Shown: in pieces, positions 21,350 through 33,700 of the stretch
How positions within the stretch are numbered: position 1 is the stretch's first letter
Layout of the letters: every line of letters begins with the position of its first letter
NCBI GenBank assembly: GCA_037447605.1
Contig: CM074807.1
Span: 1,240,001-1,304,000 of the forward strand
Source of the DNA: Zygnema circumcarinatum SAG 698-1b
Lineage: Eukaryota > Plantae > Zygnematophyceae
Direction: 5' to 3'
Length of the DNA stretch: 64,000 bases
Program-made: the position numbers and the translations under genes
Notes under the pieces: generated by a model
Told to the model about the DNA's origin: nothing
Seen by the model: only the letters and a program-made list of their open reading frames with translations
The model's database searches: none

Positions 21350-21830
21350 CCTCCTCTCGGTGCCTTCCTGCTACAGCCTGCCTCGTGCCTACGGTCGAGG
21401 TCAAGAGTGTGAGAGGGAGAGGCGTTCCGTACTCCTGCATTCATTCGCTTCAAGGCGGCAGCTGACGCAATCGTCTCATACAAAAGGCAGGTCAGGGGGA
21501 GCACGAGGGTGCTATCGTGTTGGCTATGGCCGCCTCCCTTTAGAGCAAAATCTTTCTCGGCTGAGTCCCATCGCAATTTTGGCAGCCATGGCTGTTGTCT
21601 CCATAGCTTCTCCATCATCAGCTCTGCTTTCATTTGGTCGTACACGTTCTTCTGTCTCTGTTCATTGCAAAGAAGGTCAGCCATGGCGGCGGTATAGTGG
21701 ACTCTCTTGCCATCTAGCTTTTAGACATTGTAGTAAACAAAAGGCAATAGGACATAGATTGTGGCGAAGGAGGTCTCCTTGTGTCAGAGCTGCAGTCCTC
21801 CCTGTGGATCCATGGTCTCCTGGAGGTCTG
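21050..21830. repeat. Copy 1 of a local segmental duplication (PPD2 exon 1 + shared promoter + DUF3593 5' end)
   Basis: Collinear similarity to 28240-28960. Examples: gcagcaagcagga..gcgcctcggaatgg vs gcagcaagcagaa..ccgcctcggaatgg; gccttcc..tgcctacggtcga vs gccttcc..tgcctgcggtcga; ccatggcggcggtatagtgg vs ccatgacggcggatgtagtg; tgtggatccatggtctcc vs tgtgaatccgtggtctct. Boundaries are approximate. Confidence 0.88.
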
Positions 21831-23251
21831 GACAGCCAGAGCATTGCGTCTTCTCTCTTTGCAGTGTCTCTTTTCCCTTATATTGGCTTTCTTTACCATC
21901 TTACTAAGTCAAAGACTGCGCCGAAATTGACACTCTTTGGCTTCTACTTCCTCCTTGCCTTCGTCGGAGCTACAAGTAAGCCTGGTGACAACCAGCCCTT
22001 GTGACAAAAGATCCACATAAGTGGATGGGTTGAACAGAACTTGCATTAGGTTAAAGAAGCCATCCGAATTTGCATATGGACTGGGTTGATCAAAGCAGAG
22101 TATATACTAGCTTATTAGAGACAACAAGTGAAACATGTCACCTTGAATGTCCTTCAAACATTTCTTTCACTTGAGAGCCAGGACTGTGCTTTCTACCTAA
22201 GAACTGATTGGGTCTTGCCAGCCTTCTCAGACCCTAATGGAAGGCAGTGGGTTTTATAGCATACATGAAGCCCTTTAGTCATGAAAATTGCATGGTTCGT
22301 TCCTCTCTGCATACTTTGTTCAATATTTTCCCTCTCGTCTTTTCCTTAGTCGTTCTTCATGGCTACAGCGCCTCACGCAAATTTATCAAATGGTTTGAAA
22401 TCTATTTGAATTTAAGCACTTAAAAATAGTGGAGCCAAATATGACCTGTGAATAGATGGACTTTCTGAAGCTCCTCTTTTTGGGAGGCATGAAGTTGAAG
22501 ATTGTTAGGTTCTAATGTTGGATCACTGGGGGGTGTTATGGATTGCTATTTCAGTTCCCGCTGGAATTTATGGTAAGCTGACTTCCCTCAAAGTTGAGAA
22601 CATTTTCGTTTGCAAGTAGCGCAGAAGTGCTTCCTTGTATTTCTTGTATCCCTGCGCTGCTTTCGCAACTATACAGCTGTTCAGCAACTCATTGCCACGT
22701 AGTTATGGTGCACTTAATTTACGAATTATTCAAGTTTCTGGCAAAAAAAATGCTTTTTCTTTTGATTCAAGAGAAATGCCAAGGCAGACATATTGGGCGT
22801 TTGCTTTTTGAGCAGCTCCGTTAAATATGCACTCATGCAGTCTTACTTGAAAGAAGCTTGAGCTGTAAACATATACTGCCCAGATTGCGGAATCCAAGCA
22901 GTAGAGATAGGCGGTGTGAACTGTGAAGCTAGCTCATTCTGAAGGTTGTCCTATTTTTTTTCATCTTTATGTTTCCTAGTTGCCAAAACTGGTTCAGGTG
23001 AAAGTAGAGAATGGAATCGTTACTTTCCTAATCCTGGGTTGTGGGGAAGGGCGTTTACCACAGCCAAAATTCAATATGGGACATCTTTATCGAACGTTGA
23101 TTACCTTCATGGGAGTGCTGAGTCCCTCCTTACCATCACAAATCTGTTCATCGTGTTGGGACTGCGAAGGGCGCTAAAAGAGGAAGTGAACGCAGTGGCT
23201 GACGTCCCAAACACTGAAGCATCTAAAGCTGTGGAAAACACTGACACATAA
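21588..23251 (+). CDS. DUF3593-family chloroplast membrane protein
   Basis: Exons 21588-21975, 22555-22572 (18-nt microexon, IPAGIYA) and 23064-23251. An S/R-rich transit peptide is followed by SSLFAVSLFPYIGFLYHLTKSKTAPKLTLFGFYFLLAFVGATIPAGIYAKIQYGTSLSNVDYLHGSAESLLTITNLFIVLGLR, the recalled DUF3593 pattern. Head-to-head with PPD2, 239 bp between ATGs. Confidence 0.88.
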
Positions 23252-24972
23252 GCGCCTGTTCAAAAGGTAAATTAATTATGGAGTTTAGAAAACTGTTTTG
23301 CAGCCAGACCCAGAATGGCTTTCCTTTCGTGTGATCTCTGAAATGCAGTACTTGTTGAAGTGCGGTGAATAGGAATAGGTCTTGTTATGAGGGTGGATTA
23401 CTACCATTTTCTGTGGAATTCAACGTTTTTATTGTTTCAGGGCGGCTAGGCAGGTTTTTCTTGCGTTTAGCGTTAGATAGGTCCCTGTGCAGCAATTTCC
23501 CCTCCTTAGAACTTGACAAATTCAGTTTCTTAGAAGTAACTAAGCAATAGCTGGTTACCTGGCTTAGATTCCAATAGCCTTCTCGATGGATGTTGAAGGC
23601 GAGTGGGTTCGAGTTTGTGGCCTCGTGCGTAATTTCATTCACACTCTAACGGGACAGGTTCAGTTCTGTAAGTTTAAAAACATATTGAGCATATTGCTAG
23701 GATGACGATGTGCACGATGATGGAATTATGTTTCTGAGGGAGATGATGTACATGATGATGTGATGATGTGAGGATGATGTGCACAAATGAAGAGCGATGG
23801 AATGATGATGGGTGATTTTGCTTAAGCATAATAAGCATCCTAACGAAGGCGGGCCATTTCTTGCATGACAGCATAAAGCATTCTAGGGATGTGAGTTATG
23901 GCCTGAACCAGATGCGCGCTTGTGCAGTGCAGCTCAAATAGAGGCTTTTGAGCAACGACGACAACAAGCGCTGCAATTTGCATTTGGATCGGACCTCTGC
24001 GTTGCATGCAAGGCACTGCAACTTCGACAGTTGGATGCCGTGGTAACGAGTTAAGGTGTGGTTTTGACAGTTGCGGTTCGGATAACGCAAGCGAATTCTG
24101 TTCTGTACTATAAAGACATTGTGTATGTCGCCCATCTTTTCCTCTTCGTCTAGATTTTTTTGTAGAAAAGCACTCATTTCTTCAAAAAAGAACAATAATC
24201 GAGCTTTTTAAGTTCTTCACAAATCAGCAAGACTAATAGCAAATCTATCCTGCAACCAGAGGTGTCGACGAAAAGGGGTGCGAATCAAGAAAGAGAAAGT
24301 AAAAATTGAGAGGGTCTCTCTCGGCTTTTGGAAGCTTCAACTCGGCACAGTCACGGTTCCGTCATTCCGTCCATGTACGGGGGACGGACGAAGGCATGGG
24401 ACACCCGTGAATGGTGTGTTCGACGGCTCCCGTTTGGGATGTTGCGGGTGCAAGGTCGAACGTTGGGAATTTTCGAATGTGGTGTGGGTGAGAGGACGGT
24501 ACGTTAAGCGCGCAGAGTAGACAGAGGGAAGGGAAAAGGGGGGGGGAGAGGAATGGAGAGAGGCAGGCAACGAGGGAGGGATGGTGCTTGACAACCTGAC
24601 GGCATCTATGTCACGCAGAGCATGACATGAGCCTGCTCTTTACATCCGCAACGTCATCGCGCATCCTCACACAACATCATCGCTTTCCATCTAATTTTGA
24701 GACAATGAATCGCCAAAATTAAAGAGCAAAGAGCCGTGCAAAACATGAAAAATTATGTAAAAAAGTGAGCGATGCTCTCATCAGTGGAGACCAGCATGTA
24801 CCGCCGACAAGGTCCTCTTGCGTAGTTACTGCGCATGGCTTGGACATTCTCCTCTCCAATGGTCACAAAAATTCGTCAAGGCTTGGAATGTTAAGTTAGA
24901 CATTCGAATGAAAAGTCCTCCAAGTGGCGGACGATTGACTTTGGGCAGAAAGGAGGACAACTGGAAGTGAGC

Positions 24973-27900
24973 TCAAGCAGGGGTGAGTCCCACAACGCCT
25001 GCCACCCCCCCGGCCCCCAATAGGTTGGCACAGCTGCCATTGAGAAGAAGGTATGGGAAGGGCGTGTAGGGCTTAGGAAGGAACTCCTTCCCACCTTGCC
25101 AGTCCGCCTCTAGAGGAGGATGAACGGACTGCCACTTCTGCCCCCTCGAGATTGAAATTTGCTTACAAGACATCTAAATACCGAACAGCAGATAGTCCAC
25201 ACATTCTTGGGAAAGCTTTGGAAAGGTACCGCAAGCAAGACGGCCGCCTGCATTGCCGGTTGTGCGGCTGAGCTCAACCCCACCTGCAGAGGCCATAGAG
25301 AGAGGGAGGGGAGTAAGAGACGAGAGGCATGTGGTAAGTCTGTTTCCATACAAAATCTCTAAAACTGCTCTCCGCATTAGCCTGTGTTAAATTCTCTCGT
25401 CCTGCATCATGAGGTCTTGAATGCGACTGCACCTTCAAGCGGTGCATCTGTGAAATGACTTAAAAGAAGGAACTTCTCAATGGACCCCTCGCTGATGCAC
25501 ACTATGGCGCAGTACTCACCTTTGCCAAGGTCATCTTCGAGCTCGTGCACCACGAATGCGCGGCCAACGACAGAGTTCACCCCAGACAAAGGAATCTGCA
25601 CAAGATGGAGAGTGGGATGAAGCCAAGAGTCCGAAGTTGTGCATGTGCAAAAAATAAGGAGAATAAGGAGAATGATGTATAGAGTGTGGAATAACCGCAA
25701 AGAAGAATCCAGGATTGCGGCAATTAACGAAGAATGAAACGCAAGGCTCAAAATAGATAGATCAGAAATATCTGACCTGTGAGTCGATCATTTCTGCCTC
25801 GGCCAAACCTGCAGGACCGCATGCAGTCCGGCCGTCAGAAGCAGCAAAATCTCAGGCTCAAAAAAAACTGGTCATATGCTTAGTAAGCTGAAATCGGCGA
25901 GACAAAGATATTTATCACTCACGTGCGACATGCTCAGGAATCTCGAAAGAAAATCGTTCAAGCAGCCGACCTCAAAGCCTTCTCATAACAGTTACAAGCC
26001 TTCAGCATACAAGGGAGGGTTCCGATGAGCAGGCACTCGAAACACACTACCTATTGATGGACAACCCTACAGGGAAAATTGCATCTAATAGCTATTCCTA
26101 AACCCTAAACCCTGAAGCCAGAGTCAGCCCTATAGCACGTACCATTCTCGTCCGCCAACACATTGCCCAAATCCCCCGCATGCCGCACCTCATCGTCCGG
26201 GCTGCCATGTGTTAAACCCTTAGGGTTGAAGTGGGGTCCTGCCTCCCAATAGCAGGTCCTTTCGCTCAGTAGTAGTACAATGTCACCACTTCGGTGGGTT
26301 ACAAAGTTGAGAGCATGATTTGATGGAACGAATAGAATAGAGGGGCAAGCTCACATAGCATGCAACAGTTGAAAGAAACAGAGGTCGGATGTCAAACACT
26401 TAGGTGTTGCGAGCAGCCAAGAAGAACTGTTGCCGTTCGTTACGAATGTGTTTAGTTGAATAAGGGCTTCATTTAGCACGAGTTAGAAATGTATAGCTTT
26501 AAAGCCCCATAGAGCAGTGGTGGTGGCTGAGGGGCTCACCAGTTGAGATGCAGCCGTTGGTAGTATCTCCGAATTGGTGCTGCAATGCCCACAACAAGTC
26601 CAAGCTGAATTTGTTCATAATCATAACAACAGGAGTAGTAAGCGCCGGACTTACATCCTCGAAGGCAGATAACTTATAGTTTTGACAACTCTTGGATGTA
26701 CTTGCATATGGCTTCTTTAACTTCACGTGCTTTCCCAGCATAGAATTGGAAGGTAAAAGTGCTCATTTAATAGTAAAACAGACCATAATATACAATACAG
26801 TAACGAGGAAACTACATGGACAACTCTATCGTTCGCTTGCCCTCGCTTCAGACGACAGTTCCTTGACTTAAACATATTCCAATTTGACCAATTTTTCCAA
26901 TTTGAATCTGATTTCAGAGCTGATAGAGCTTCAAAAGAGGGAAGGAACAATGAGATTGAGGTTTCTCCAGACAGTGTTAACTAAGGAGATCAGCTAGATT
27001 TCTGCTAACAGATTAAAAAAAAAGTCATTTCTCCCTTTAAGAGTGACCTATACCGCGTTCTAGTGAAAAGAAATACATACCAAATGGAATCCATGCTTGC
27101 CAGGAGTAAGTCCAGTGATCCGCAGAGTGACCTTTGTTGGCCCTGCACTTTAACAAAAGTATACTTTCAAATAGTACTACTGCAGAAAACAATGCGCTAT
27201 CTGAAAATGATTTGAGCTTCAAGAACTCGTCGGCTAAATGTTTTGACCGAAACATGCGAAACTTCAATATCTTCTAGTTAGAAGCAAGGATATCAAATTC
27301 TCTGCGCTCCGCTTAGGCCGTGAAGAGATGCAAAGACCAGTATTCGCAGTCACAAATGATACCTCCGAAAGGAGGATATGCGAGATGCATGCACTCTACT
27401 CTCTCTATAAGCCTCCAATACATTATTCACTACGATAATGAGATGGCACAAGTTCCACAAAAGGATTCGTTACAAGCTTGTTCAAAAAGGCCTATTTCCA
27501 GGCTTACAAGGTTAAGAAATCATTGACAGTAAGACTAGACTGCCATCACAAGTCAGCTGACTAAATCATGACTGATAGTCTTAATGCAACACTTCGTGCC
27601 TCTGCTCTTGGCAGGAAAGACCAACCATCACCGCTCACCATCGCCTTCTTGCAGAAGGCTAACAACTCCTTCAACTCCCGCGGTTCCTTTTAAAACTGCA
27701 ACAGCCTTCTTCGTCTCCGTGAACGCCTGAGATGGAGCTGGACGACAGAAAAGAGAGGAAGGTTTAGAAAAATGGCATTATTAAGGCAAGAGCAAAAAAT
27801 GTGCCTCAAAAAGCTTCCTTTGATAGTTTTTAAGAAATAATAGTGTGCCTCTTCCCCGCCTATCCATTCTCTACGTTTCCTTAGAGCAGAGTACAAGTGT

Positions 27901-28532
27901 TTTCAAAATCTTCATAAAAAAAAATACTGTCCACGGCTAAAAAACTGCAAGACCTTTCCGTCTGAGTATTTTTTGGAGAATTAACCAATCTTCAGGAGGC
28001 ATAGAAATGGGTTTGTGTGTGTGTCAATAAGAAGTTGAGTAAACGCAGCCCTTACAACAGCGTCGAGCTCCTGAGCTGAGCTAGTCAGGCACAGGAACTG
28101 CTTTGCTGCTATACATGGATGCACTACTAGAAAAGAGAACATCTACAACCACTGTACTGTTGAAAAACACATTCCAATGTTATATGTTTATAAATTCAGC
28201 CGAAGAAAGTCAGGAAAATAAGCACGGCAGCGTTGCAGAACCATGATACCTGCTTGTGCTCTCTCTCCTACCAACTGAGCCGCTACAGGAGCAGCAAGCA
28301 GAAGCGCTGCCGACCGCCTCGGAATGGATGAAGGGGTAGACCGCCCTTGCTCTGACAGCTGCTCTCCCTCACGCGCGTTGGTATCCTCCCCTCGAGCTCT
28401 CACAAAGCATGCACCTGAAGCTCTTTGCCACCTGCAGCTGCCTCTGCTTGCGACAGGCGGCCATTGCGAGGCACTGCTTGTGAGAGGAAGAAAACTTGTA
28501 GAAGAAACTGCTGCACAAAAAAGCTGCGCCAT
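24973..28532 (-). CDS. CSD2: Chloroplast-type Cu/Zn superoxide dismutase with a PPD2-derived bipartite (Tat lumen-type) presequence exon
   Basis: Nine exons: 28532-28250, 27737-27639, 27142-27081, 26579-26540, 26238-26143, 25808-25777, 25595-25520, 25283-25230, 24998-24973. All are GT-AG and phase-compatible. Mature part: [16 protein letters not shown]...[41 protein letters not shown]...[43 protein letters not shown]. All Cu/Zn ligands, both disulfide Cys and the catalytic Arg are present. SOD identity is certain. Assignment of exon 1 rests on phase match, position and the lack of another clear candidate in the intervening sequence. Confidence 0.92.
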
Positions 28533-28960
28533 TTCCTTGATGACAGCCTTCCACCTAAAAGCTTGCCTGCGGTCGATAGAAAATGCGAGCCTTTTTTAGC
28601 GACAACAGTTTGTGCACGGCGATGTTTAACGTTCCTGACGGGAAGAGTTTGAAGAGACAAGGAATGGCAGGCGGCGAAAGCTACGGCAGCCATGCTTGCC
28701 TCCATGAAGCGCACTGTATCAAATTTCATTTGCAGTTTCAGCAGTGGTCCTGTCTCGGCAGCAGTCTCCTTTGCCAGCTGCGCTTTCTGCTGGTGTGGCC
28801 CCACTTTCTCGTCTCGAAGGTGGTGGTCCGCCATGACGGCGGATGTAGTGACCTTTCTTGCCATTAGAGTTTCGTTAACGTGCAGAAAACAAAAAATGTG
28901 GCAAGGAAAAATATCTGTTTATCATACTAAATTGTTGTGAATCCGTGGTCTCTTGTTGTT
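28240..28960. repeat. Copy 2 of the local segmental duplication (now SOD exon 1 + promoter + DUF3593 relic)
   Basis: Same orientation as copy 1, about 7.2 kb downstream. See the shared blocks listed for 21050-21830. Confidence 0.88.
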
Positions 28961-29465
28961 CCTCTCCCATTGCATTCTTAATAAAAAGCAATTAGTTTGC
29001 CATCATCTTGGAAATGCTGAGAAATCGTTGTGTTTAGAATATTGGCAGGCATTGTGCTCTGTTCTCAAAAGTTGTAAATTTTGCGGCCTTCTGAATGCAC
29101 TTCGAAACAATTAATTGAGAACTTCTCAGTCAGTCGTCACAGAAAGCCCTTTACGTCTTTTGCTTGCTTGCTTCGGCTCAGAGTTCAGTCCGTAGAGTTC
29201 AAAAAATCTCTATGGAAAATAATAATTATTTTTCAGCAACTTGCAAAGGGATGGCAGCTAGCAACGACGAAAGCTGCTCTGCGTTACAGATCGTAACAAG
29301 GCATTTCGGAAGTTCAGTGGTTTGCACTCCGAGTTTGATGCACTCTCTGACTACCGTTTCCGCAGTCACCTTCTCTTGTGTAGGTGTGAGAGCATGAATA
29401 ATGGGAAACGTGCTGAGCGGTCCCTGCTAGTCTCTGATTAGGATTCTATGGTAAGTAAACTTCCT
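28740..29465 (+). pseudogene. Decayed duplicate of the DUF3593 gene
   Basis: Blocks homologous to DUF3593 exon 1 (cagctgcgctttc; ccatgacggcgg; gtggcaagg; tgtgaatccgtggtctc) and to the microexon/donor (ggattctatg|gtaagtaaacttcc at about 29441-29465 vs ggaatttatg|gtaagctgacttcc at 22563-22586). No intact reading frame; stops by 28940. Confidence 0.7.
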
Positions 29466-30746
29466 GCAGGCTCATCGACTGATAGATAAAGATGTCATTC
29501 ACGATGCTTTGAACAAAGTCGATGCTTGGAGTTTCTATGCATCATTCACGAAATGACCATTGATGGCAGATTTCTGCGCATACTTTCATTGCAGCAAAGT
29601 AAGCCTGCCAAGGCCAAGTAAAAATTGTCAGCAGATGCACTTTCCACTTCTTCAACATTGCTGGACATTTTTGTCAATCATTCCGTACTGTAACGACCTG
29701 TAAGTCTATTTGAAGGCAGCGTAAGCAACAGGTCAGAGGTGTCGCAACTGTCGAGAAAGCAGCGAGACACGGCAGCATAACCATGGCAACCTCATCATGT
29801 TTAATTTAAGCTTCTGCTTTGTCACACGTTTCCCTCCTGCTGAGAGCGAGCATGTAGCCAAATGCATCAGCATAGAGAAGAATAGAGGTGTCCCCATATC
29901 AGCAGTTTTGGCAGCTTACTTCATTTTGGCTTCTTTACTTTCTTGACTGGTTACATTCCATGGGGCAGATTCAGCAATCGTGTGAGGGCGACGCAGAGCT
30001 AGAACTCAAAGCAGAGGATTTTGCGATAGCAGGACAGGATGCTGCGGCCATGTGGAGGGAGGCATGGGAGACCAAGAGGCCAATCCACACAAGCTCTCTG
30101 ATTTGTTTCAGGACAACCCAAAAGCGCACAATGAGAGCAGAACAGCAGCAGCACTCGAGCACCGCTCGCAGCCCATCCCTTACACACAGTCCACAGGAAT
30201 CCTGAGCTGCAACCCAGTACGGTACACAGCAGAGACTGACAGTCTAAGTCAATCATCTGTGGGATCTTCCGGGTGAGACATGAAAGCCTTCCCCCACCCT
30301 GCCTTTGAATGAAAATCCCTTCCTGGGGCTACAATCACACGGAATATATTTTGTAAGGCGCCTTAACGGCAGTGGGACGCAGCTGCGCCTTTCTATGCCC
30401 TCCTAGTCTTCTGCTTCCTACTGGCTTAAAAGCTGCTACCATTCAAGGTATTTGAGAGGGGCCTAGAGCCACTACTAAAGGAAAGAGTCCACTTAATGGC
30501 GTTGCCTTTACCTGGCATGCAAGAGCGCCTTTATTTTGGATTTTGGACTTTAACTAATTATTCCCAATCTGCCTCTTCACTGGATTCACTTCCAGCCAAA
30601 GACAATTGTCACAGCAGAGCTGCCCCGGCATACTCTTTCCAAATGGAAGTGCTGTGCCGAATTCGTCACAATAGGAAAGTAAAAAAAAGTGGAAAAAAAG
30701 GCAATCCAGCCTGCCAGTTTGCCTGATTAAATCTCTCTCTAAAACC

Positions 30747-33700
30747 TTAATATCTCCGGCTTGGCTCCCGGAAGAAGGCGTGCTTTAGCGCCTCTCTCGC
30801 AGGTAGTCGTTCAGAGGGCTCGAACTTGAGCAGGCCGTGTAATAGGTCTATCAAAGTTCCCGCAGAGTGCTCCACGTGTTGCATTATGAGGTCCTGTACA
30901 CAAATTAAAGAGACTAGTCATATCCCCTGCTCGAAGAACCAATTGTTTTGGGCTGAAAATTCTAAGTGTGACCACTAAATTAAGGTGCTTGAAGCACAGA
31001 GAAATCTGATAATCCAATTTCTACTTGAGAACGTACTCCTCTACAAATTACAGCAGGATTCAGCCGAGATGTCAGTTTGGACTCAAGTGCAGCTCTCACC
31101 CGCATTCGGGGTAATCTCCTCACTGCTCGGACGCTTTCTCTGGAAACTGCTCCCTCCGGCCAATTCAACTCTCGCCCATGCCGGAAATACTTCTCTGCTC
31201 TTCGGCTGCAACAACATGCGTGCGTTTGTGAGGAAGGATTCTAAACAACAATTGATCATGACAACGTCTGGACTTGTAAATAGCGGGAAATTCTATTTTC
31301 TTTTTCTGTCCTGTCTCATTATTAGCTGTCACCAAGTGGCAACTCTGTAGTGGTGATCTTGGATAAGAAAACGGAAAGTAACGCCTGAGATTTTGGAAGC
31401 CAATACAGATTACGCCATATCAAAGGGGGCTACTTTCTTTCTTCAAGCAGAATGAATGACAGAGTTTCTTTCGAGATCTGAATGAGGTACACACTAAACT
31501 CACGTGTATCATACAAAAGCACGAGTTGCCACGTAGCATCTAGCATGCAATACAATGGCAAAGGTAGCTTTATCACTTACTCTGCCATTTTTATCATCCG
31601 TGGTGGGATTGGCCCAATCACGCGTTCCATCATGGCTAGGTGTTCAAGGTTCTCATGTGTTTGGAACAAGGCATCTCCCTGGTGAATTCCACATCCAAAT
31701 GCATTGTAAGCAATGAACACCTTCCGGCCATACACAACACCTAACCAAAAATCTCTAATAGTACAAACAATGACTAAACAGAGATGTTCTGCAAGGAGGA
31801 ACACATTTCGACTAAAACAGCAGGAATGGCAGCACTCACGGTGACAAGCTCCACCAAAATGCAGCCTATGCTCCAAATGTCGCAAGGGTAAGTCCAACCA
31901 AGACCTGTCCACTCTCTGTTCAAGACGATCAGTACAAGTGCAGGAGCTTCAATTACAGAGCAATAAAGAAAAAACAGCTCATAATCATAGCACATGCGTT
32001 GGGTTTTAGGAAGCTTATGCAGCTATTCAACGTTTGACTCCAAATAAGTGAGTGAAGAAGACCTGCTCACCCAAAATGACTTCAGGTGCTCGGTAGTGGC
32101 GGGTTGACACCACCGAACAGTGGTAGTGACTGTCGAAAGTGGCGCTCCCAAAGTCTATAAGTTTTATCTCACTGCTGCAAGGAATTCGTTTGAGATGTTT
32201 GCTCGGCTGAGCTGACTGCCGTACACAGGCCCAAACAGTCCACAAGGGTCAGAACAACACAGAAAACTGTTGGGCAGCTAAGATCGATCGCCGTTATACT
32301 TTGGGTGTTGTTCCATTGTTATCTTCTGATCAATTCCGAGCGAAGGCATTCTCAGCAGCAGACAGACATAGCCATGGAGTAGGCTGAATGCTCCAACTCC
32401 TACCACTCGTCCCACGTCACATCACTGCCTATTCAATGATTCCAAGGACAAGCATTCTGCCGTTTGCTCAATGTAATACCAGTTACCTTGTATTCTGGAA
32501 CTTTAATGTAATCGGCAGAGTTGAGAAGAATGTTCTCGGGTTTTAAGTCAGTATGTATCAACGTGAGCTCGTGCATGTCTGCAGCAACATCCAACAAGCA
32601 AGCTAAATCATACTTGGCTTACTGACCCATGCATATCGAAAGTGTTCCTAATAACCTAAGGTTCCCTACTCCGTTCAAGCTCATGGTTAGCCCGCCGACA
32701 TGCTAACTGGCGACAAGCATACAAAATTTCCTACGTTAAGTAAAACAGTGGTGAAGGAAAAAGCGCATAGCCGGTCCTAGAGAAAGGGCCTGCAGAACAT
32801 CTTTTTACTGACAGGCAACTGCTTCCAAAAGCTGCCGAGCAAAATCTCGCGCCATGTCGACAGTGAAGGGCTTGTAATTGTTTTTGCGGAGAAAATCATA
32901 CAGACTCGGTCCAAGCCTCTCAAATACCTGCAAAGATTGTCCAGAAATAACTTAACGACTCGATGAGACAGAGAAAGAATGTATTCGCAAAGTAGTGAGT
33001 AACACCACCATAACGAATCGAAGTCTGCAGAACCAAAGCAATTACAACTTCTCCAAAGGACCCTAACATCTCTGATATGCTAGTTGGCTGGCCAATGTAT
33101 GATATAAAACCAGTGTTAGACTAGTCTAGAGGTAAAGTAGACAAGACTAAAGACTATATTAGACTAGGGTAGACTAAAAGTAGGCTACGTGCCCCTTGTT
33201 GCAAGCACAATCTAGTTTCTGCATGGGCAACAAAGTTGTGCACACTTGCTGCATGGGATTTAGAAGATACATGGACGGCGACCAACTAAAATGGTCCATG
33301 ACGACAGAGGCTTCCCAACATTTATGTCTTATTTCTGAGCTTCATTGTGATGGAGTCAAAAGCTTTGTTTTCCTTCTGTTACGATATCAGCCAAAGAATA
33401 AAACGTTTCTCACCATGCAAATGTGGTTGCGGTAGTCGAACCACGCTTTGAGCTGCACACAACCCCTGCACAGAGAGCAAACCTAGGTCAATTGCCGGTA
33501 ACACTTTGACCTTGCTAAGGACTCAATGCAAAAAATGAACAGTGCGTAGATATGTCCCTGCTTTTTGATTGATCAGCAAGCAAGTTCTTCACGGAAGCAA
33601 CATAATGACAAGCTCGCTAAATCTCCACTAAAAAAAAAAGTGAATAAATGGATTTTTTAATACTCAGCTCTAATGAGATTTGACATAGTAGGACTTAGAG

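Follow-up and report, generated by a model that had tools for sequence, protein, structure and literature searches.

The 64-kb stretch of contig CM074807.1 from Zygnema circumcarinatum SAG 698-1b that was analysed here (the window, to which all coordinates refer) carries on its minus strand a gene for a Cu/Zn superoxide dismutase (SOD), the first coding exon of which is a diverged duplicate of the first exon of a neighbouring gene for a PPD2-like, PsbP-domain protein. From the sequence, the SOD gene was assembled into nine coding exons, with GT..AG at all introns and an open reading frame (ORF) of 255 amino acids. Exon 1 (28532-28250, 283 nt) begins with the ATG at 28532 and comprises 94 codons plus one nucleotide, ending in phase 1 at the donor GCAG/GTATCA; it encodes a bipartite presequence. 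Intron 1 (28249-27738, 512 nt, GT..AG) separates exon 1 from exon 2 (27737-27639), which has a phase-1 start and continues the frame across the junction; in exon 2, a short linker (APSQAFTE) precedes the beginning of the mature SOD. An earlier reading made from the DNA letters alone (hereafter the sequence-only reading) had given exon 1 these limits, its 94 residues and its phase-1 end, all of which were borne out by translation; the phase-1 opening that it assigned to exon 2 agreed with our own reading and with the gene model. Residues 95-255 of the chimeric product form a complete Cu/Zn SOD. Since the ORF has no methionine codon before residue ~200 other than the ATG at 28532, synthesis of the enzyme must include the presequence of exon 1.

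The mature domain was examined for the residues of the active site, with H46, H48, H63 and H120 scored as copper ligands, H63, H71, H80 and D83 as zinc ligands, and Cys57-Cys146 as the disulfide. Exon 3 (27142-27081) supplies H46 and covers positions 17-34 of the Pfam Sod_Cu profile, exon 4 (26579-26540) supplies H48 and Cys57, exon 5 (26238-26143) H63, H71, H80 and D83, exon 7 (25595-25520) H120, and exon 8 (25283-25230) Cys146. Exon 6 (25808-25777) was placed by the gene model and RNA contigs, and the coding part of exon 9 (24998-24973) encodes GVVGLTPA, a C-terminus of the chloroplast type, and the TGA stop codon (24975-24973). Exons 3, 5 and 7 matched Sod_Cu (PF00080) in collinear order with E values of 2e-3, 3e-8 and 7e-4, respectively, and because the pieces are short only exon 5 passed the gathering score by itself. 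Exon pieces matched 111 and 96 solved SOD chains, with the chloroplast enzymes of spinach (1srd) and tomato (3hog) among the best solved matches and the best among the plant entries. Alignment to solved chains, including human SOD1, showed that H63, H71, H80, D83 and H120 are kept (PHFNP..HG..RHAGD, VVHE), and direct reading of the gene model located H46 and H48 (GFHLH) as well as Cys57 (NGCIS) and Cys146 (LACG). The complete set of metal ligands claimed by the sequence-only reading is therefore present, and by sequence the mature enzyme falls within the chloroplast Cu/Zn SOD family as an ordinary representative with predicted activity. Exon 8 reads GKGGVELS at a site where plant chloroplast enzymes, we presume, usually read GKGGHELS; the position taken by V is not a metal ligand.

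The transcript was studied in assembled RNA contigs (Logan) from four public runs (X1, X2, X3 and X5) of the same organism, which come from four studies, over positions 24000-29900. The joint between 28250 and 27737, which skips intron 1, was found in contigs of all four runs at contig depths of 175-454, with CT..AC on the plus strand corresponding to GT..AG on the minus strand. The remaining seven joints of the SOD gene were likewise present at their predicted positions. RNA contigs over exon 1 had depths of 112-454, and exon bins were ~50-680 deep versus 0-13 in most intron bins of the same runs. Exon depth so far above intron depth means that the contigs derive from RNA, and it rules out a processed DNA retrocopy as the origin of the joined contigs. 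In the contigs of the four runs, which show presence and not absence, 27737 was entered by no further joint and 28250 was free of loose ends. As far as such contigs can tell, the SOD has the PPD2-type exon as its sole first coding exon, and that exon is not spliced elsewhere. The junction that the sequence-only reading had proposed, for checking in RNA, thus exists, and the different SOD first exon that would contradict it was seen in none of the four runs. The 3' untranslated region spans 24972-24586 as far as RNA contigs extend (24586-24999 in X3 and 24733-24997 in X1). The 5' leader (28964-28533) is of uncertain length, since a spliced contig reaches 28964 and that of another run ends at 28535. 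We regard the chimeric gene and its transcript as real with near certainty.

Two further observations concern contig ends within this region. Some contigs of X2 and X3 follow the window above 28946 and carry unrelated letters below that position, and this loose end may be a splice or the end of a plus-strand transcript that issues from the relic of a bidirectional promoter described below. In intron 5 of the SOD gene, a telomere-like repeat with two TTTAGGG units lies on the minus strand at 26100-26125. Low-depth contigs of X2 and X3 depart from the window at 26116 and continue with 255 nt of other sequence, which probably stems from a similar repeat elsewhere.

The parent of exon 1 lies on the same strand ~7 kb downstream of it, in a gene with four exons. 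Its first exon (21349-21064) has 95 codons plus one nucleotide and ends in phase 1 at the donor GCAG/GTAATT, directly after an A-x-A motif; exons 2-4 (20730-20636, 20036-19881 and 19744-19493, minus strand) complete an intact ORF of 262 amino acids. Exon 4 matches the Pfam PsbP family (PF01789, E 6e-10). Among Atlas clusters, the protein lies nearest to 'PsbP domain-containing protein 2, chloroplastic' (score 0.97, 205 shared features), an automatic cluster name that is the sole source of the PPD2 subfamily label. The two first exons align from end to end, with 51 of 93 amino acids identical (55%), 71% nucleotide identity, the same intron phase and three indels, each a multiple of three. Chance does not account for this similarity (E 1e-34 by blastn in the window and 1e-12 by tblastn), which identifies exon 1 of the SOD gene as a diverged duplicate of its PPD2-like counterpart. 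The sequence-only reading had put the identity by eye at about one half and had noted the shared intron position and phase, and both hold.

The duplication was not limited to the exon. Local alignment detected a stretch upstream of the SOD gene (28894-28739) that is homologous to 21742-21583 upstream of the PPD2-like gene (z = 14.8 against shuffles). On the parental side, this stretch runs antisense to the initial coding exon of a DUF3593 gene (21588-22001, plus strand; Pfam PF12159, E 4e-13), which is divergent from the PPD2-like gene and shares an intergenic promoter region with it. The copy has lost the reading frame, and beside the SOD gene the relic is not followed by any DUF3593 domain. 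Local alignment of intron 1 of the SOD gene with intron 1 of the PPD2-like gene gave no detectable homology (z = 0.6 versus shuffles). Neither was any PsbP-domain exon or relic found in a search around the copied exon, in line with the sequence-only reading, which had seen no PsbP-domain exons after the copy. An intact DUF3593 gene next to the PPD2-like gene and a frame-broken fragment next to SOD exon 1 indicate a transfer from the former locus to the latter, and sequence comparison thus supports the PPD2-like gene as donor and the SOD gene as recipient. Within the window, neither another SOD nor a recognisable remnant of an ancestral first exon of the SOD was found. A simple tandem duplication, which predicts an original SOD copy upstream, is therefore unsupported unless a later deletion is assumed. 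The proposal that the SOD gene captured a PPD2-type first exon is upheld by paralogous exons with compatible phase-1 ends, by a co-duplicated flank with its decayed piece of DUF3593, and by the chimeric junction in mature RNA.

The captured exon has the layout of a lumen-targeting presequence. Its residues 1-46 contain 11 Ser/Thr, 8 Ala and 4 Lys/Arg and no Asp or Glu, which makes this part transit-peptide-like as in plastid presequences, and they end in FVRA, where VRA resembles a site of the stromal processing peptidase. Then follow an acidic spacer, IPRR (RR being residues 72-73), a hydrophobic core of 16 residues and AQA at the exon end. The mean Kyte-Doolittle hydropathy of the core is 1.76, compared with 1.77 in the PPD2-like parent, and the copies also share the RR position, small residues at -3 and -1, a basic residue in the c-region, the acidic spacer and the acid-free first 46 residues. 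A transit part followed by a twin-arginine (RR) motif, a hydrophobic core and A-x-A is the classical form of lumen precursors for the chloroplast twin-arginine translocation (cpTat) pathway, as known from PsbP, PsbQ, PsaN and the PPD proteins, and the SOD presequence displays this architecture in full, with a moderately hydrophobic core and a small-x-small site. When exon 1 was searched by language-model features, its named neighbours were mostly clusters of lumen proteins (PsaN, Psb27, PsbQ and TL16.5) at scores below 0.9, which we take as a weak lead. Generic Tat-signal profiles matched neither first exon in Pfam (E <= 0.1) or NCBIfam (E <= 10), as is to be expected from models of the bacterial type.

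We compared the two first exons for traces of selection. Over the whole exon, dN was 0.32 and dS 0.55 (dN/dS 0.58, 55% amino acid identity). In the N-terminal part these values were 0.37 and 0.60 (dN/dS 0.62, 47% identity), and in the block from IPRR to AQA they were 0.18 and 0.45 (dN/dS 0.41, 76% identity). The twin-arginine motif, core and A-x-A site are thus the best-conserved block in an exon with only in-frame indels and an intact frame, which is what the sequence-only reading had noticed. Because dN in this block is halved at a similar dS, selection is favoured over gene conversion; the latter was rejected as the reason for the well-kept block since its dS of 0.45 is close to the 0.60 of the N-terminal part. 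We also simulated drift with a simple model, in which the parent exon was mutated uniformly to the observed divergence of 29%. An open frame was kept in 8.7% of the replicates, and the frame together with RR, small residues at -3 and -1 and a hydrophobic core in 0.065%. The sequence comparison therefore indicates selection on the Tat part. A dS of ~0.5 implies that the duplication is old, probably by tens of millions of years.

These results show how the chimera came about and suggest what its presequence may do. A segment of ~0.7 kb or more, made up of part of the divergent DUF3593/PPD2 promoter region and the first exon of the PPD2-like gene as far as the splice donor, was duplicated and came to rest ~0.5 kb upstream of exon 2 of the chloroplast-type SOD. 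Since both genes have a phase-1 intron at the boundary between presequence and mature protein, the copy is joined to that exon without a shift of frame. The copied segment supplies the promoter-proximal region of the SOD gene, its only in-frame start codon and the whole presequence. The first ~46 residues would carry the precursor through TOC/TIC into the stroma, where the stromal peptidase would cut near VRA. There, in the compartment of the copper chaperone, the SOD would fold, and it may gain Cu/Zn and its disulfide. The exposed RR/hydrophobic/AQA signal would then engage the cpTat machinery (Tha4, Hcf106 and cpTatC) and the folded enzyme would be moved into the lumen. Cleavage after AQA by the thylakoid processing peptidase would leave a mature N-terminus that begins with APSQAF, and the lumen would thereby gain a soluble scavenger of superoxide.

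Delivery of this SOD to the thylakoid lumen by cpTat is, in our analysis, probable. It is inferred from the established ability of Tat presequences, including those of PsbP-family proteins, to carry unrelated folded passengers into the lumen. This compartment is oxidising and corresponds topologically to the periplasm, the home of bacterial Cu/Zn SODs. For the fuller statement that the plastid Cu/Zn SOD is a soluble lumen enzyme, exported in a folded and possibly metal-loaded, dimeric state by cpTat by means of a presequence from the adjacent PPD2-like gene, we see slightly better than even chances.

The most serious alternative is that the borrowed presequence serves as a stromal transit peptide only, with its Tat part ignored, inefficient or acting as a stop or attachment segment, so that the SOD, like CSD2, the usual chloroplast enzyme, would stay in the stroma or at the stromal side of the thylakoid. 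Several points that weigh against a lumen location are at home here. By appearance, the first 46 residues would suffice as a transit peptide on their own, and a dN/dS of 0.4-0.6 (0.58 over the whole exon) reflects only mild constraint. For the plastid Cu/Zn SOD, loading is normally the task of a chaperone in the stroma, and the enzyme is classically found in the stroma or attached to thylakoids in association with PSI. The thresholds of the simulation were chosen after the data had been seen and its model is simple, so that its result for the maintained Tat features is supportive but not decisive. Against a purely stromal role, however, the block from the twin arginines to A-x-A is the part of the exon with the low dN at unchanged dS, and in the simulation its survival under unconstrained drift was very unlikely. 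In addition, by the rules of cpTat such signals export unrelated folded passengers. We therefore consider a stromal enzyme unlikely, while taking it more seriously than any other alternative to lumen delivery.

It might also be that the spliced transcript is abundant but poorly or not translated, or that it is dispensable, in which case the working plastid SOD would come from another locus and the chimera would be a by-product. The observations that can be held in favour of this possibility, and hence against a functional lumen enzyme, concern the 5' end. In the long-leader form of the transcript, an upstream ORF of 154 codons that starts with an ATG at 28864 overlaps the main ATG at 28532. 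The contig of X5 stops at 28535, with Illumina adapter directly after, which suggests a recurrent RNA 5' end three nucleotides before the main ATG in this run. The same contig reads T7 instead of T6 at 28522-28517 (codons 4-6), a variant that would shift the frame from the ATG at 28532 and fuse the upstream ORF in frame with the rest of exon 1. T6 is, however, the state in X2 and X3, and a word search found the reference state at the ORF start in 20 runs from 7 studies, DNA runs included; the T7 of X5 is thus a minority allele or an artefact of the assembly tip. A comparable upstream ORF of 129 codons (21684-21295, minus strand), which overlaps the main start in another frame, is also found in the PPD2-like parent. 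Both upstream ORFs, that of the SOD gene spanning 28864-28400, lie in DNA antisense to DUF3593 exon 1 or its relic, and whether they are present in mature leaders depends on the transcription starts. Moreover, at a synonymous divergence of ~0.55 per site, the chimera still has an unbroken frame and every indel is in frame; none of the SOD ligands has been lost, and expression is high in all runs. An untranslated or dispensable by-product is improbable in view of these data.

Least probable is that the PsbP-domain gene copied the presequence of the SOD, or that lumen-type SOD presequences are old and widespread in the lineage and not a local capture, because the intact and the frame-broken DUF3593 pieces are distributed as described above and because members of the PsbP family reach the lumen as Tat substrates in green plants generally, while CSD2 presequences are simple. 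Further points count to some extent against the preferred account of a lumen-targeted chimera. A minor alternative first exon of the SOD may still exist, given that contigs reveal what is present and not what is absent. A phmmer search with exon 1 against 1.84 billion representatives returned a single low-complexity match, to a protein of 1374 amino acids, and word-index searches with exon 1 among candidates of 52-164 and 74-236 amino acids returned none at E <= 0.01. The length windows leave out both the 255-residue chimera and the 262-residue PPD2-like protein, which the longest stop-free stretches around the two first exons, at 135 and 130 amino acids, are too short to bring into range, and the exon-only searches came up empty largely because such filters exclude full-length proteins.

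Upstream of the SOD locus, exon-like ORFs with protein-kinase motifs are present on the minus strand at 31570-32600, and by sequence this looks like a gene for a kinase of the LAMMER/CLK type.

How superoxide is handled in the lumen, which houses the donor side of PSII, plastocyanin and violaxanthin de-epoxidase, is poorly understood, and we know of no lumenal SOD gene in plants. In the open-access literature that we searched, no gene for a plant lumenal Cu/Zn SOD has been described, which is consistent with the statement in the sequence-only reading that a description at the gene level is lacking. The combination of a plastid SOD with a lumen address that was copied from an adjacent gene, and of which the promoter fossil is still visible, is thus new to the searchable literature. 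If our interpretation is true, a lumenal superoxide dismutase would for the first time have been defined genetically in a plant, and its history would be a natural case of sub-organellar re-targeting by duplication of one exon. It would also mean that a full change of sub-organellar address is possible in one step, by local duplication of ~1 kb and phase-compatible introns. With a Tat lumen presequence on a natural SOD gene of high expression, the question of lumen superoxide becomes directly testable, and the chimera also provides a natural setting in which to ask whether cpTat moves a dimer that is metal-loaded and disulfide-bonded.

The chimeric SOD can be compared with several known systems. 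With chloroplast enzymes of the CSD2 type (1srd and 3hog) it has in common the mature domain, the ligands, the disulfide cysteines and a GVVGLTPA-type tail. It differs in its presequence, which is a simple stromal transit peptide in CSD2-type enzymes, whereas that of the chimera is bipartite with RR/hydrophobic/A-x-A elements and is paralogous to exon 1 of a PsbP-domain gene. The architecture of this presequence is that of the PsbP family (PsbP, PPL and PPD1-7), PsbQ and PsaN, and in the case of the PPD2-like neighbour the likeness is by descent and extends to the intron phase after A-x-A. The passenger of the PsbP family is a PsbP fold, in contrast to the Cu/Zn SOD of the chimera, where no PsbP exon follows the copy. 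A Cu,Zn-SOD in the intrathylakoid space of spinach was reportedly claimed on biochemical grounds by Hayakawa, Kanematsu and Asada in 1984. To our knowledge, no gene or targeting signal stands behind that claim and the lumen proteomes of Arabidopsis do not support it. The spinach case is therefore biochemistry without a gene, while the chimeric SOD is known here from its gene-level signal alone.

Organelle presequences have been gained by exon shuffling or duplication in other plant genes, as in cytochrome c1, whose presequence derives from GapC, and in transferred genes for ribosomal proteins. As in the chimeric SOD, a targeting exon was taken from another nuclear gene through a phase-compatible intron. 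Those events gave an address to a protein that had none, whereas here a plastid protein was apparently moved between sub-compartments, and the chimeric SOD also differs from them in that the donor is the adjacent gene and the promoter fossil is visible. Among SODs, Chroococcidiopsis has an MnSOD with a predicted Tat signal (SodA2.1) and Anabaena a membrane-anchored MnSOD, with predicted Tat signals or lumen-facing anchors in these enzymes (PMC8193680). These cyanobacterial enzymes use Mn instead of Cu/Zn, are prokaryotic, have neither an envelope-transit part nor an origin by exon duplication, and their case is only predicted; yet with a Tat-type signal on a SOD and a proposed role in the thylakoid lumen, they are the nearest functional analogues of the chimeric SOD (PMC8193680).

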